This document shows, one piece after another, positions 47,142-62,603 of a stretch of DNA of 64,000 nucleotides; position 1 is the first letter of the stretch, and each line of letters begins with the position of its first letter. Under the pieces are notes generated by a model. It was given only the letters and a program-made list of their open reading frames with translations. It had not been told where the DNA came from and made no database searches. The DNA comes from Octopus sinensis (Eukaryota): positions 51,162,464 through 51,226,463 of the forward strand of contig NC_043011.1 of the NCBI RefSeq assembly GCF_006345805.1. Direction: 5' to 3'. Both the position numbers and the translations under genes were made by a program.

Positions 47142-47323
47142 GGGCGTCGTCTAGTACCAGTTGTGTGGGTAAGGCACCAGGAAGCTATGCAATCCCAGGA
47201 GACTGCAAAAACTATATGGTATGCTCCAATGGAAATAAACAAATACTTCCCTGTCCTCCTGGAACGTCTTTCAGCACAGCCATTAAAAACTGTGACTTCT
47301 CTACAGAAGTGCCCGGATGTTGA
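47142..47323 (+). CDS. Terminal exon C1: CBM14 / peritrophin-A chitin-binding domain
   Basis: tttAG acceptor, phase 1. CVGKAPGSYAIPGDCKNYMVCSNGNKQILPCPPGTSFSTAIKNCDFSTEVPGC* has six Cys in CBM14 spacing. The path from exon 11669 through L1 is 1364 nt + 1 = 455 codons including the stop. Confidence 0.93.
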
Positions 47324-47388
47324 AGTTTCTTTGCTATTAAGATACTAAATGAAAAGAAAAAAATTACCGAAACTGAATTTAATTGAAA

Positions 47389-47414
47389 AATAAAGAAAAT
47401 TGCTAAGAAATAAA
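47389..47414 (+). terminator. Poly(A) signals for C1
   Basis: AATAAA at 47389 and 47409 followed by a T/GT-rich tract. Confidence 0.65.
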
Positions 47415-47575
47415 ATGTCTTTTTTTTTGTTGTTTTTCAATCTTTATTATTTATTTATTTATTTTGTGAAAGGACCATTTTAAATATTCCAGTATGGTTC
47501 AAGCAAGACTCATGATAGTGTACTCTTCGGTTCTATAAGATCTTGCTGCTGTTGTGACACCACTTCTGAAATATT

Positions 47576-47792
47576 GATTTCAAATTTAGGCACAAGGTCA
47601 GCAATTTTGGAAGAGGGGGTATGTTGATTATATCAACCCTCAAAACCCAACTGGTGCTTCTTTATTGACCCCCACAAAAGGATGAAAAGCAAAGTCGACT
47701 TCAGCGGAATTTGAACTCAGAGTGTGAAGAAGAATGAAATGCCACTAAGAATTTTGCCCAACATGCTAATAATTCTGCCAGCTTGCCACCTT
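47576..47792 (-). mobile_element. SINE with 16-bp target-site duplication CCACTTCTGAAATATT
   Basis: TSD at 47560-47575 and 47793-47808; also present after C2 and C4, absent after C3. Confidence 0.8.
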
Positions 47793-49303
47793 CCACTTCT
47801 GAAATATTAATTTATAATATGGGCATATGGCCACATATTTGATATATATTACCTTTTCTACCACTACTACAACAGTCTCTGTTCTTTACCTCTAGCTTCT
47901 TCCTCCACCTCCATCTCCTCTCTCTATCTTTTCCCTCTTACAGTTTGACCACTTCTACGATAGTCACTGTTTCTCACATCTACTCAATTTACACACCACC
48001 TCCATTTCATCTCTCTCTGTCTCCTCACTCCTACTATTTGTGTCACTACTAGAACAGTCTCCATTGCTCACATCTACCCAGTTAGATACCACCTCCATCT
48101 CATACCTCTTTCCTTTCACTGTTATATTTTCTACCCTTCTACAATGGTTGCTGTTGCTCAAATCTACCTTTTTACATACCACCTCCACCTCATCCCTCTG
48201 TATCCTTTTCTAAACATTTTGGTCAGTTCTGCTCTAGGGCTATAGCCCTTCTGAAATTCTCTCTCATGCCAAATTCTGCTAATATCTCAGTGAAGTAGAA
48301 GAGTTGTTTGAGCATCAAATAAAATGCTTTGTAACATTCATTCCAGCATCTTACACTTTGTGTTTGAACCCCACCAAGATCAGGCATGGCCTTAATTTTT
48401 CCAGAGTCGATAAACATAATATCAGTTTAAGGCAGTGAACTGGTAAAAGAAATGTCAGAATGGGACTTGGTGTGTAGTTGTGTCTTGTGATATTTGTTCA
48501 GACCTGCTCTGAGTTCAAATTGCTTGTTGGTCTACCTTGGCAGTAGACTAAATCTATCATACGACTGTACAATCTATGGTATTGGTATATAAACATCATA
48601 TATATATATAGTATTCCAATAGGTTTTCACCAGTCAAAAAATACATTTCAATCAATCATGCCCAATGATTGACAATTTACATTTCTGCAGTTGAAAGGTT
48701 CTTCAGCATAAAACTGTTTTGTAACATGAATTGGCTGTTATGAGACTTAATTATCTCTCTCTCTATATATCTATCTATCTATCTATCTATCTATCTATCT
48801 ATCTATCTATCTATCTATCTTTCTATCTATCTATCTATCTATCTATCTATCTATCTATCTATCTATCTATCTATCTATCTATCTATCTATCTATCTATCT
48901 ATCTGTCTGTCTGTCTATACATGTGTGTGTGTGTGTGTGTGTGTGTGTGTGTGTGTGTGTGTGTGCATATGTATATATATATTGCAGATAAGGTTATAAT
49001 CCAAAGTGTGTTCTCTTGAAGCTCATCTGCTTATTCAGTTGCTCATATTTGTTTGAGGTGGGGTATGCATGGAGTATATTTTATTGCAGAATAATTACAT
49101 ATCAAAACAAGAGATTGGAAAAGAGTTTTGGTATTAATTATTCACATATTTCATTTGCTAATAGGAGTTACAAGATTATACATGCAGGAGAAACATGTAC
49201 ACACACACACACACACCCTCAAACACACACACAGACACACACACACACACACACACACACACAGAGGAACAATGCTCAATGCACAAAAGCATACATTATA
49301 AAT

Positions 49304-59456: not shown

Positions 59457-59519
59457 GTGCGCCGGATGTCGTAACCCCTGAACCTCCAGCTCAGACACAG
59501 TCACCGACACCAGGAGACG
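59457..59519 (+). CDS. Linker exon L5 (identical to L3)
   Basis: Same 63-nt sequence and splice sites as L3. Confidence 0.8.
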
Positions 59520-60688
59520 GTAAGACATATAAATATAATTTGCTGGCTTGAAAATGCTTTGTGTACAGACATGCACTCATACACACATATGCATGAACCC
59601 GTACATGCATACATGCACACACACACACACATGCACACAGTTGACTACTTACTGTAGGCACTAATGTATGTATGTATGTATGTTTATGTGTGTGTGTCTG
59701 TGTGTATGTGTGTCTATGTGTGCCTGTGCATGGACATGTGTGCATGTATATATTTGTCTTTGTGAGTTATGTTTCCTTTGCAAATTTCAAGCCAGTCACT
59801 TATAGAAGGCAAGGCTCTTTTGTTTAAGTCAAGACAGCTTTTGGAGATTTTATTTACCTGAACTGGTTGATATATACATATATCTGTATGTTTATGTATG
59901 TGTATATATTGTGCGTATGCGTGTGTACAGATATTAAACGGTCATGCATCTCACATTAGCATGCAGATGGGCATGTTTTGTAACTGCTTATATGTCTGCA
60001 TCCATTTGTATTTGATAAATATATGAGATTGTGAGAATATGTATGCATGAAATTGTATGTGTGTGTGTATATATATATATATAAAAACCAGCTTAGAGAA
60101 GAAGAAGAAACGAAACGAAACCAAACGAATTGAATCGAATCGACGCGAAGGCGTTCACTCATACAATAGTGTAATAAATAAAATATATGCATACATACAA
60201 ACATATATGTGCGTACCTACATCTACATGTATATATACATGCCTATATAAATATATATACGTGTGTACAGGACACCACAAATAGACGTACACACACACAC
60301 ACACACATATATGTATAATGTATTTATTTACATGCAAATTTATATGCGTAGAGGCACGTGGCTTAGTGGCTAGGGTGTTAGCATCATGATCGTAAGATTG
60401 TGGTTTCGATTCCTAGACTGGGCGACACGTTGTGTTCTTGAGCAAAACACTTCATTTCACATTGCTCCAATCCACTCAGCTGGCAAAAATGAGTAATGCT
60501 GCGATGGACTGGCGTCCCGTCCAGCTGAGGAATACATATGCCATTGAAACTGGGAAACCAGGCCCATGAGCCTGGCTAGGCTTTAGAAAGTGAAAATACT
60601 TTCACACTTCCAATTTCAACCATTATGTTGCATTATGAGAATGATGATGTTTCAATAACGAAAGTAATGTTTCGCCGAATTAGTCATA

Positions 60689-62358
60689 TCTATACTATAA
60701 TAAAGAAAGCTGCTTATCATCTGTAATGTGATAATGTTATAATATTGTTTCACTTTCATTCTTTCACTTTTAGTTCTAATGTGATAACATTAAGATCATC
60801 TTATTTCTATTATATTTGAAATGAATGAATAATTTACATCTTAATGTGAAGAACATTACACATCAGCAACTTTCTTTCTTTATGGCCCCACAGTAGAGTG
60901 GTGTGTCAGTGTATGTGTGACTGACATAACGAATGGCTGCAGGTGAAACTCTTGACAAAAAGCAATGAGGTGGCCGGTGTAAGGTATATAAAAATACACA
61001 TTTACCATTCAGCTACCAGTTAATAATTATCGCAGCAGCAGTTGCAGGGTTTCAACTTAATTACATTTACATATTTACCCTTAAATTAGCATTTAATACA
61101 TGTGCTTAATATATATATATATATATATATTAAGAAATTATCTATAATTATTATTGTGGCATTTACCGTTAAATTAGCAGTTCATAAATGTGCTTCTATT
61201 TGGTTAAAATATACTGCATACAAAAATAAAAATATTACATACATACAACTGCTTACAAAAATATGGATTAATGTATAGTTTTTTTTCTATGTTCATAATT
61301 CTTTGTTTACAATTTTGAAAAAAATATGCCACCAAAGAAAAGACATAATCTCTCCAGAAACAAGTATAAAGCAAAGAGGATCGTAGAAAACCAAAGGCGA
61401 GAGTCTGAAGAGAGAAACAAGAGGAGATTTTCTCAAGATCAGCAAACGCATACTGCAGCCTGTCAGACAGAGTCTCAGGAGAAAAGGGAGATAAGACTTT
61501 CCCAATATCAGCAAATGCATGCTGCAGCACTTAATGCTGGATCATTAAATCAATGTTTTAATGATTAGACAGAGGTCCAATAGAATAGCTCTCAGAAACA
61601 AACTATTTTGGAATTCGTTCTTCACAACTCCTGAAGCTGCTTTCATATATGATCCATCCCATTCTTATAAAATCGATAACTCTGTCCAAATTGGTGTGCT
61701 AAACACCAATCATCGTTTCTGTAGAGCTTTAAAATTTTTTCAAATGAAATAAATGACATGTGCTGCTCAGGTGGCCAGGTAAGATTGCCAGGACTATCAG
61801 TTCCTTCTCAACCTCTTATGGATCTTCTAAAAGGCACTTCCATCCAGTCAAAGGATTTTCTGATCAATATCAGACAATACAACTCTGCATTTCAAATTAC
61901 ATCGTTTACTGCATCTAAGAAGATAGTTAAACATGAATTTACGCCAACATCCAAGTTCAAGGGCAAGTCTATCACCTCATTGGCTCCCTGTTACCCACAA
62001 ATGAACAACCACAGTTGCTCCAAATTTGCTTTATGAGTGATGTAGGACAACAAACCTGAAGGTGTGAAAATTAGACACAACGCCGACTGCTGCAAAAGAG
62101 AGTATATTCACTGACAGATTTTAGGTGTGTTCAAAAATCACATAACCTCCACCCCCAATTTTCCATGACAAGTCAGGGCCCGAAATATTCTAAACGGATG
62201 CATAGCATGTTGCTTAGTCGAATTAGCCCATCATTACTCCACAAATGTTTTGTTGTCAATGTTGCACTTTCCCATATCGCCTGTTTCAATGTAACTGTAA
62301 TATATTATATACAAACTATGCCATTTTAATCACAAGCAACGCCAGGTATCTCTGTTAG
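60689..62358 (+). mobile_element. Second copy of the intronic Helitron (L5-C4 intron)
   Basis: Duplicate of 54129-55810 (offset 6560); ends CAAGCAACGCCAGGTATCTCTGTTAG. Confidence 0.8.
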
Positions 62359-62421
62359 CGATATATGTATGTACACTCACACACTCACATATACACATGT
62401 ATTCTTTCTTTCACCATTTAG

Positions 62422-62603
62422 GGGCGTCGTCTAGTGCCAGTTGTGTGGGTAAGGCACCAGGAGGCCATGCAATCCCAGGAGACTGCAAAAACTATATGGT
62501 ATGCTCTAATGGAATAAAATTTATATTTCCCTGTCCTCCGGGAACTTCTTTCAACGAGGCCATTAAAGTCTGTGACTACTCTTCGAAAGTGCCCGGATGT
62601 TGA
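62422..62603 (+). CDS. Terminal exon C4: CBM14 variant
   Basis: CVGKAPGGHAIPGDCKNYMVCSNGIKFIFPCPPGTSFNEAIKVCDYSSKVPGC*; intact acceptor and six Cys; AATAAA at 62906 and 62926. Confidence 0.85.

Follow-up and report, generated by a model that had tools for sequence, protein, structure and literature searches.

Why does one octopus locus carry four tandem copies of a CBM14 chitin-binding module, and have the copies been driven apart by selection? The question is raised by a 64,000-nucleotide (nt) stretch of the Octopus sinensis genome (the window; approximately CM016873.1 51,162,464-51,226,463), in which a tandem repeat at 45-64 kb holds the copies C1 to C4 with start-to-start spacings of 3352, 5380, and 6548 nt. 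An earlier note on this DNA had read the copies as functional and as shaped by diversifying selection on their binding surface. The window carries most of the O. sinensis gene annotated as “acidic mammalian chitinase,” which encodes a GH18 domain, a linker, and one CBM14 per protein, and C1 to C4 are alternative last exons of this one chitinase rather than separate genes. The locus is probably to be understood as the 3′ end of a single secreted GH18 chitinase with four alternative CBM14 last exons of two sequence types (A and B), with flanks subject to gene conversion and with relaxed constraint on the exons. Exactly four CBM14 copies are present in O. sinensis, and the next gene begins 3.2 kb past C4. 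The four exons are

47142-47323, forward strand: C1, alternative terminal exon, CBM14 of type A, TGA at 47321-47323, AATAAA at 47389 and 47409; isoform X6 and cDNA BAX02570.1.
50494-50675, forward strand: C2, alternative terminal exon, CBM14 of type A (N49D relative to C1), AATAAA at 50741 and 50761; isoform X4.
55874-56055, forward strand: C3, alternative terminal exon, CBM14 of type B, AATAAA at 56353 and 56373; isoforms X3 and X7.
62422-62603, forward strand: C4, alternative terminal exon, CBM14 of type B (F33, F35, N44), AATAAA at 62906 and 62926; isoforms X1, X2, and X5.

Each exon spans 182 nt, is preceded by an AG acceptor and a polypyrimidine tract, encodes G plus 59 residues, and ends in TGA. 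All four yield full-length matches to the CBM_14 profile (PF01607; 52.2-56.6 bits, cut-off 22.1), covering positions 1-53 of its 53. The six cysteines show the spacing of the family, in which they make three disulfides. The reading frame and all six cysteines are retained in C1 to C4, as the earlier note had stated, and the cysteines (C7, C21, C27, C37, C50, and C59) are also kept in V1 and V2, two of the Octopus vulgaris copies, and in B1, the Octopus bimaculoides copy. Two AATAAA signals follow each stop codon, at 66 and 86 nt in C1 and C2 and at 298-323 nt in C3 and C4. The 3′ untranslated region (UTR) of both type-B exons contains an insert of ∼230 bp (∼56109-56340 and ∼62657-62892), apparently a dispersed repeat with a related piece at 42591-42624, that shifts the poly(A) signals from ∼66 to ∼300 nt past the stop and is absent from type A and from O. 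bimaculoides. The 62 nt before the exon (47080-47141 in C1) and ∼55 nt after the stop (47324-47378) are nearly identical in O. sinensis and O. bimaculoides, with 1-2 upstream differences, and the CBM14 exon itself differs between these species at 21-31 of 177 nt; the conserved borders may be splicing or 3′-UTR elements. Among the best 150 matches of a HMMER library search with the 59-aa C1 peptide, most were proteins with multiple CBM14 repeats, and none was an orthologue.

The case for a single gene comes from its annotated products. The joined GH18 exon pieces, used as a query, matched “acidic mammalian chitinase isoform X3” of O. sinensis, whose 90%-identity cluster comprises RefSeq isoforms X1 to X7 and the cloned cDNA BAX02570.1; all of these mapped to the window at 100% identity. 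Exons 1 to 9 are common to all isoforms, the linker exon following exon 9 differs in X5, and every annotated isoform ends in exactly one of C1 to C4. Because the RefSeq isoforms and the cDNA share one chitinase body, each ending in one C exon, the copies are not separate genes. The terminal exons are combined with a micro-exon and with five linker cassette exons, located by isoform mapping:

43227-43243, forward strand: micro-exon 9, 17 nt, encoding G/SSSST/G, between the GH18 body and the linker exons.
46362-46424, forward strand: L1, linker cassette exon, 63 nt, phase 1-1, APDVVTSEPPAQTQTPTPGD.
49716-49778, forward strand: L2, linker cassette exon, with A to V at the first full codon.
52893-52955, forward strand: L3, linker cassette exon, identical to L5.
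58088-58150, forward strand: L4, the most diverged linker cassette exon, in a unit that has lost its CBM14 exon.
59457-59519, forward strand: L5, linker cassette exon.

All five cassettes are 63 nt long, in phase 1, and Pro/Thr-rich, and linkers of one to five modules are possible. Splice sites, reading phases, and poly(A) signals of the array are all intact. The annotated isoforms combine them as follows:

X6: linker L1, terminal exon C1.
X4: linkers L1 and L2, terminal exon C2.
X3: linkers L1 and L2, terminal exon C3.
X7: linker L1, terminal exon C3.
X5: one linker exon (L3 or L5), terminal exon C4.
X2: linkers L1, L3, L4, and L5, terminal exon C4.
X1: linkers L1 to L5, terminal exon C4.

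In the mechanism proposed here, each mRNA would carry one CBM14 and one to five linker modules, and the choice would lie in competition for the donor of a linker exon, which would be spliced either to the next C exon, followed by cleavage and polyadenylation, or on to the next linker exon. When micro-exon 9 is skipped, the next linker exon is frameshifted to ...QELGCAGCRNL and a stop, giving an enzyme without a CBM. This C terminus is that of the O. vulgaris models P0273 and P0278 and also opens the tail of O. bimaculoides X2 (P0152); the skipped form is either a genuine CBM-less isoform or reflects a micro-exon missed in those annotations. The cloned cDNA has a 23-residue linker variant that is missing from this genome, which suggests a polymorphism. 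A literature search found no paper describing this exon architecture, and we know of no such enzyme-targeting alternative-exon array described for any chitinase. The set of four CBM14 end-exons, five linker cassettes, and a micro-exon is a more interesting result than selection, and it is already implicit in the RefSeq isoforms; with gene and isoforms in RefSeq, the gain is one of interpretation, not discovery.

The array was then compared with those of two relatives. In O. bimaculoides there is a single linker exon with a single CBM14 exon (B1), and the neighboring GH18 gene lies 2.2 kb beyond. O. vulgaris (assembly GCA_951406725.2) has at least three copies, V1, V2, and V3, in the same order and with the same spacing; the examined locus reaches 2 kb past V3, and a possible fourth copy would lie beyond. 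The exons fall into two types, A (C1, C2, V1, and V2) and B (C3, C4, and V3). Given the one copy in O. bimaculoides and the same-order copies in the other two species, the array arose after the O. bimaculoides split and before that between O. sinensis and O. vulgaris. The unit duplicated in tandem comprised a linker exon, a CBM14 terminal exon, and the 3′ flank. V3, the C3 orthologue, has an in-frame stop (TCG to TAG) by which the last five residues, including the final Cys, are lost, as well as a P-to-S change adjacent to the last Cys. A duplicate of codons 1-18 of the V3 exon (O. vulgaris locus 76468-76644) lies ∼200 bp upstream (76265-76318). Many long microsatellites, with periods of 8 and 12 nt or as runs of CA and TA, occur at positions 1-700 and at 25.6-26.0, 43.4-43.7, 45.9-46.3, 48.7-49.0, 52.1-52.5, and 57.4-57.8 kb; several lie at the joints of repeat units and may have helped unequal exchange.

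The O. vulgaris assembly also bears on whether the array is real. Haplotypes misassembled in tandem, or sequencing errors, could be suspected from the near identity of the C1 and C2 units (2 of 968 flank columns and 1 nt in the exon), but the independent assembly repeats the tandem order, the spacing, and the states typical of each type: V3 and C3 are distinguished by 2 of 177 nt, and at codons 25-55 V1 and V2 read as C1 and C2 do. An artefact is thereby refuted for the array as a whole, and we give this explanation almost no credence. The variable sites are likewise not sequencing errors, a cross-check that covers the type-specific states, excluding the C4-only residues F33, F35, and N44.

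The counts from which the earlier note argued were reproduced codon by codon. C1 and C2 are 1 nt apart, and the difference is nonsynonymous (N49D). C3 and C4 differ by 6 nt in five codons, all nonsynonymous (I25M, I32K, H33F with 2 nt, L35F, and S44N), with five of the 6 nt within codons 25-35; C1 and C4 differ by 22 nt, amounting to 12 amino acid-changing and 3 purely synonymous codons. The sampled intron divergence of about 4 differences in 300 bp was close: the noncoding sequence of C3 and C4 differs at 22/1206 (1.8%) in the near flank and at 63/4648 (1.36%) over the full unit, for which the note had proposed a comparison of exon and intron. The generalization that the copies differ almost only by amino acid-changing substitutions stands within types, where all 14 changes are nonsynonymous, but not between them, where the two stems carry 9 nonsynonymous and 7 synonymous changes. 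Set against chance, each of the contrasts in the C3/C4 pair is marginal: p is ∼0.2 for six nonsynonymous differences out of six, 0.02 (post hoc) for five of the six within 33 nt, and 0.044 for the exon (6/182) against the noncoding sequence (63/4648).

The strongest signal in the data lies in the contrast of exon and flank between types. Differences fixed between A and B occupy 14 of the 177 exon sites and 4 of the 968 flank sites (p = 5e-9), the flank being

47324-48614, forward strand: 3′ UTR and 3′ flank of the repeat unit, with 2-3% difference among all copies; recurs at 50676-51964, 56056-57336, and 62604-64000.

Pairs of A and B exons differ at 19-22 of 182 nt, and their 1.1- to 1.2-kb flanks differ by 2.6-2.9% (Fisher p = 1e-7 to 3e-5). 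In their other half (linker exon plus intron), units of different type are 9-13% diverged, as much as the CBM14 exon. On the A and B stems, the exon accumulated 16 changes (the 9 and 7 above) against 1.4 expected from the flank tree, with a ratio of nonsynonymous to synonymous rates (dN/dS, omega) of ∼0.4. The A-B dN of ∼0.11-0.13 exceeds the flank rate of 0.026; synonymous sites are raised too, and the flank is homogenized. Because synonymous sites are raised as much as nonsynonymous ones on the stems, the stem changes probably represent long-standing divergence and not a selective burst. For the type-B stem in particular, such a burst of positive selection was judged unlikely, the excess being equally large for synonymous and nonsynonymous changes. 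Inspection by eye places CpG at 5-6 of the ∼13 synonymous changes, and CpG hypermutability was considered as a partial cause of the high synonymous divergence.

The tandem copies are under gene conversion: paralogues are closer than orthologues, copies are mosaic, and polymorphisms are shared. Across 968 shared flank columns, C1 and C2 differ at 2, V1 and V2 at 25, C1 and V1 at 17, and C2 and V2 at 34. V2 is mosaic, resembling type B at codons 14-15 and at four sites far downstream, and at eight flank sites both exon types show the same pair of states. The gap between exon and flank is best explained by conversion that homogenizes the 3′ flank while codons 28-55 stay type-specific; by this account conversion continues to homogenize the 3′ flanks and has recently homogenized the whole C1 and C2 units. 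The resulting 300-bp exon island is fenced by a nonhomologous intron filled with transposable elements at −59 and by the 230-bp insert at +55. That codons 28-55 stay type-specific may reflect selection against homogenization or, equally, the insertion fences; because large insertions flank the island, a purely mechanical barrier to conversion has to be considered alongside selection.

Selection was examined with our own GY94 maximum-likelihood codon models on eight sequences (C1 to C4, V1 to V3, and B1). A single omega (M0) was estimated at 0.78, and omega = 1 was not rejected (p = 0.45; likelihood profile ∼0.42-1.5); the array alone gave 1.5 (p = 0.41 against 1), and pairwise dN/dS between types A and B was 0.7-1.1. 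The diversifying selection proposed in the earlier note is thus neither established nor excluded, dN/dS being indistinguishable from 1, the very outcome that the note had named as counting against it. In the M1a fit to the whole tree, about half of the codons fall in a class with omega of ∼0.

What lies behind the earlier impression is a real shift to nonsynonymous-only change within types: by parsimony, 14 nonsynonymous and 0 synonymous changes fall inside the two clades, compared with 18.2 and 14.8 on older branches (Fisher p = 0.0017). The rate of this recent change is that expected under neutrality, with 14 changes observed on the young branches and 15.4 expected from the flank tree (0.0871 substitutions/site × 177 nt). 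Ten of the 14 lie on terminal branches, and these may be private polymorphisms. The GH18 domain behaves similarly: over the three species its omega is 1.09, the O. sinensis and O. vulgaris sequences are separated by 12 nonsynonymous and 2 synonymous changes, and its exon divergence is 1.3%, near the intron-wide 1.6%; with GH18 omega at ∼1, fast protein evolution is therefore a property of the whole gene. In the GH18 domain, M2a against M1a gave p = 0.003, with a few multi-hit codons (aa 38 and 110). Such a pattern is not usual in an enzyme whose active site is intact. The most plausible reading of the recent amino acid-changing differences is that constraint on partly redundant alternative exons has been relaxed or that, at most, weak selection has acted.

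The positions of the variable residues were examined in a model of isoform X3, in which a confidently predicted GH18 barrel is joined by a disordered linker to a CBM14 of five strands (pLDDT 86-93; strands at positions 13-17, 20-28, 31-36, 41-44, and 49-52), in keeping with the small distorted β-sandwich (3 + 2 strands) of the family. Its best structural match is full-length human CHIT1 (5HBF), and the CBM14 aligns gap-free to CHIT1 417-466, the CHIT1 number being the CBM position plus 413. Variable sites occur on all five strands and in the C-terminal tail of the model, and sites 33, 49, and 55 each show 3-4 different residues. Several have counterparts of known role in CHIT1:

Position 15, Y or H: CHIT1 Y428, an exposed aromatic (PMC4844120).
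Position 25, M or I: CHIT1 Y438, an exposed aromatic (PMC4844120).
Position 33, Q, H, or F: CHIT1 F446, an exposed aromatic (PMC4844120).
Position 44, S or N: CHIT1 S457, medium effect in an alanine scan (PMC5459812).
Position 45, T or E: CHIT1 N458, medium effect in the same scan (PMC5459812).
Position 52, F in type A and Y in type B: CHIT1 W465, largest effect in the scan (PMC5459812).

The variable residues thus map to strands and loops that align, at ∼30% identity, with surface or chitin-binding positions of CHIT1, and the modeled alignment fits a surface or chitin-binding location, as the earlier note had supposed.

Several results weigh against relaxed constraint and conversion as the whole account. 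M2a fits better than M1a (twice the log-likelihood difference, 7.09; p = 0.029), placing 17% of sites at omega = 4.5, namely, positions 8, 14, 15, 33, 45, 49, and 55; across subsets and codon frequencies, p ranges from 0.016 to 0.042, with 11-17% of sites at omega 4-6.5. None of the 14 recent changes is synonymous, for which the chance is 0.77^14 = 0.026 or, with 3.5 synonymous changes expected, P(0) = 0.03. Several of the variable sites, listed above, align with CHIT1 residues that are important for chitin binding. Within the island, the exon has about three times as many fixed A-B differences as the adjacent 114 noncoding nt (p = 0.048), which are no neutral yardstick because they are conserved even in O. 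bimaculoides. Neutral rates vary about 2-fold across the locus, and every flank yardstick is rough; the intron-flank rates were taken from plausible 250-nt global alignment pairs (insertion-broken and nonhomologous pairs excluded) and from chained BLAST blocks. As for the use of the exons, the cDNA BAX02570.1 backs C1 only and the remaining isoforms are Gnomon models, and a search for transcript-derived fragments and small CBM14-only gene models found none.

Much of this would be accounted for if diversifying selection on the chitin-binding surface had specialized the four CBM14s, perhaps toward particular forms of chitin or the cuticles of different prey. Diversifying selection is common in salivary and venom proteins, the within-type changes are nonsynonymous without exception, the site test is nominally significant, three sites carry multiple residues, positions 15, 25, 33, 44, 45, and 52 align with exposed aromatic or binding residues that include the key Trp465, and fixed differences between types peak in the exon. 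Against this, omega does not differ from 1, recent change proceeds at the neutral rate, and the stems between the types hold nearly as many synonymous as nonsynonymous changes. The site test gives p = 0.12 with the three codons of triple-nucleotide change masked and p = 0.093 for the array alone; its support is weak, and multi-nucleotide changes and recombination, both present here, inflate it. C1 and C2 have been recently homogenized, so that this pair at least is redundant; V3 has its premature stop; and most recent changes are terminal and possibly private. Diversifying selection as the explanation of the array is therefore regarded as rather unlikely. Positive selection at a few surface sites (14, 15, 33, 45, 49, and 55) is possible but unproven, and relaxed constraint on partly redundant exons, in a gene with fast evolution along its whole length, accounts for the data about as well.

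Whether all four exons are in use is a separate matter. If only C1, the copy nearest the gene body, were truly used, C2 to C4 would be drifting pseudo-exons spliced as noise, and RefSeq would over-interpret rare reads. The cloned cDNA ends in C1, the omega of the array is near 1-1.5 at a neutral rate, V3 has both the in-frame stop and the P-to-S change beside the last Cys, and one stop-creating change is about the number expected under neutral drift, by a rough estimate. However, acceptor, polypyrimidine tract, frame, six cysteines, stop, and both AATAAA signals are intact in every O. sinensis copy, and the 62 nt before and 55 nt after the exons are almost unchanged even compared with O. bimaculoides. 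Type-B states are common to C3, C4, and V3 in two species, about half of the codons are in the class with omega near zero, and seven annotated isoforms use the exons. Pseudo-exon drift of C2 to C4 is accordingly considered improbable. The earlier conclusion that the copies are functional is supported by complete modules with their own acceptor, stop, and poly(A) signals and by their use in RefSeq isoforms; dN/dS lends it no such support. Functional copies are a reasonable inference, resting on gene context and not on dN/dS.

A more far-reaching possibility, which we hold only tentatively, is a combinatorial cassette, in which one to five linkers would be joined to any of four CBM14 heads, with the two types kept apart by selection against conversion and tuned to chitin substrates or prey. 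Chitinase is a component of octopus saliva (PMC9501996, PMC4728518), and we infer that the salivary enzyme is encoded by this gene. If all four end-exons are used, one gene would give rise to a family of chitinases with a shared catalytic domain and varied linker length and CBM14 surface. This would be a compact enzyme diversification in the saliva of a crustacean-eating predator and a natural experiment on CBM14 surface residues and binding, including the position equivalent to CHIT1 Trp465.

Returning to the single gene with alternative last exons and conversion-homogenized flanks, its parts have counterparts in known systems. CHIT1 and AMCase share with the octopus enzyme the order GH18, hinge, C-terminal CBM14, the catalytic DxxDxDxE motif, and 38-46% identity, and CBM-less forms occur in both. 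The octopus gene differs in its four alternative CBM14 exons and variable number of linker modules, whereas vertebrate chitinases, to our knowledge, have only one CBM14 per gene; moreover, its key aromatic is Phe or Tyr rather than Trp, and its catalytic domain has an omega near 1. In splicing, the nearest likenesses are Dscam, with its mutually exclusive exon arrays, and calcitonin/CGRP, with alternative last exons coupled to polyadenylation. As in these, tandem exon variants of one module are used one per mRNA with a shared constant part; unlike in Dscam-type arrays, the octopus variants are terminal with their own stop and poly(A) signals, the choice is between splicing and cleavage, and there are only four, known from annotation.

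The pattern of divergence resembles that of duplicates that keep an “island” of divergence under conversion, as in the red/green opsins, RHD/RHCE, and the models of Innan and Teshima. Common to both are homogenized flanks or introns, closer paralogues within a species, mosaics, shared polymorphisms, and a sharp coding peak; in contrast, the octopus island is bounded by large insertions on both sides. Snake phospholipase A2 (PLA2) isozymes have accelerated exons, conserved introns, and dN/dS clearly above 1. The octopus array likewise has an exon more diverged than its flanks and a secreted salivary or venom-gland product, but its omega is ∼0.8-1.5, synonymous sites are raised between types, and most of the contrast is explained by flank homogenization. 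By sequence, the nearest single cephalopod CBM14 with a solved structure is that of the squid beak protein DgCBP-3 (PDB 7BWE; E = 6.7e-8, full-length alignment), which is a structural beak protein rather than an enzyme module, and the kinship is at the level of the domain family only. The locus thus provides an example of conversion-homogenized flanks around a differentiated 180-bp exon, and a caution that positive selection is poorly supported by counts of “only amino acid-changing” differences when the duplicates are short and recent.

The body of the gene upstream of the array consists of exon 1, which lies outside the window, and seven blocks within it, located by mapping of isoform peptides (exact for exon 2) and, for exons 5 to 7, also by motif scan:

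Window −911 to −849 (∼0.9 kb upstream of the window; 17012-17074 of the extended locus in which it was found): exon 1, signal peptide.
11668-11856, forward strand: exon 2 coding block, aa 20-82, start of GH18, motif CYFTNWAQYR.
15390-15626, forward strand: exon 3 coding block, aa 83-161, catalytic motif FDGLDIDWEYP; Glyco_hydro_18, 76.5 bits.
19024-19149, forward strand: exon 4 coding block, aa 162-203.
20805-20927, forward strand: exon 5 coding block, aa 204-244, motif MSYDLHG.
22353-22538, forward strand: exon 6 coding block, aa 245-306.
24371-24490, forward strand: exon 7 coding block, aa 307-346.
28389-28510, forward strand: exon 8, aa 347-387, end of GH18; its last 2 nt, GG, precede GTATG.

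The DxxDxDxE motif is present, and D142, D144, and E146 are invariant in a 57-sequence alignment. The GH18 model has a TIM-barrel fold, with a root-mean-square deviation of ∼1.1 Å to AMCase catalytic domains.

Remains of transposons are found in the introns at 22992-23288 (reverse strand), 28751-32364 (reverse), 36910-37251 (forward), 39754-40629 (forward), and 1958-3385 (reverse); they include a mariner-type transposase fragment, reverse transcriptases, and a Pif1 2B helicase fragment. RVT_1 matches lie at 29892-30794 and 39754-40629; those to zf-RVT, at 28751-29566 and 1958-2734, are weak and do not exceed the Pfam cut-off. The open reading frames in the type-B introns (54.7-55.5 and 61.3-62.0 kb) gave no Pfam match and look Helitron-like by eye. 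Finally, the array is bounded by a second GH18 gene, encoding 390 aa, that lies tail-to-tail with the chitinase 3.2 kb beyond C4, outside the window (extended locus 83776-90526). This synteny is kept in O. sinensis and O. bimaculoides, and an identity of ∼47% was recorded for the O. bimaculoides counterpart of the second gene.

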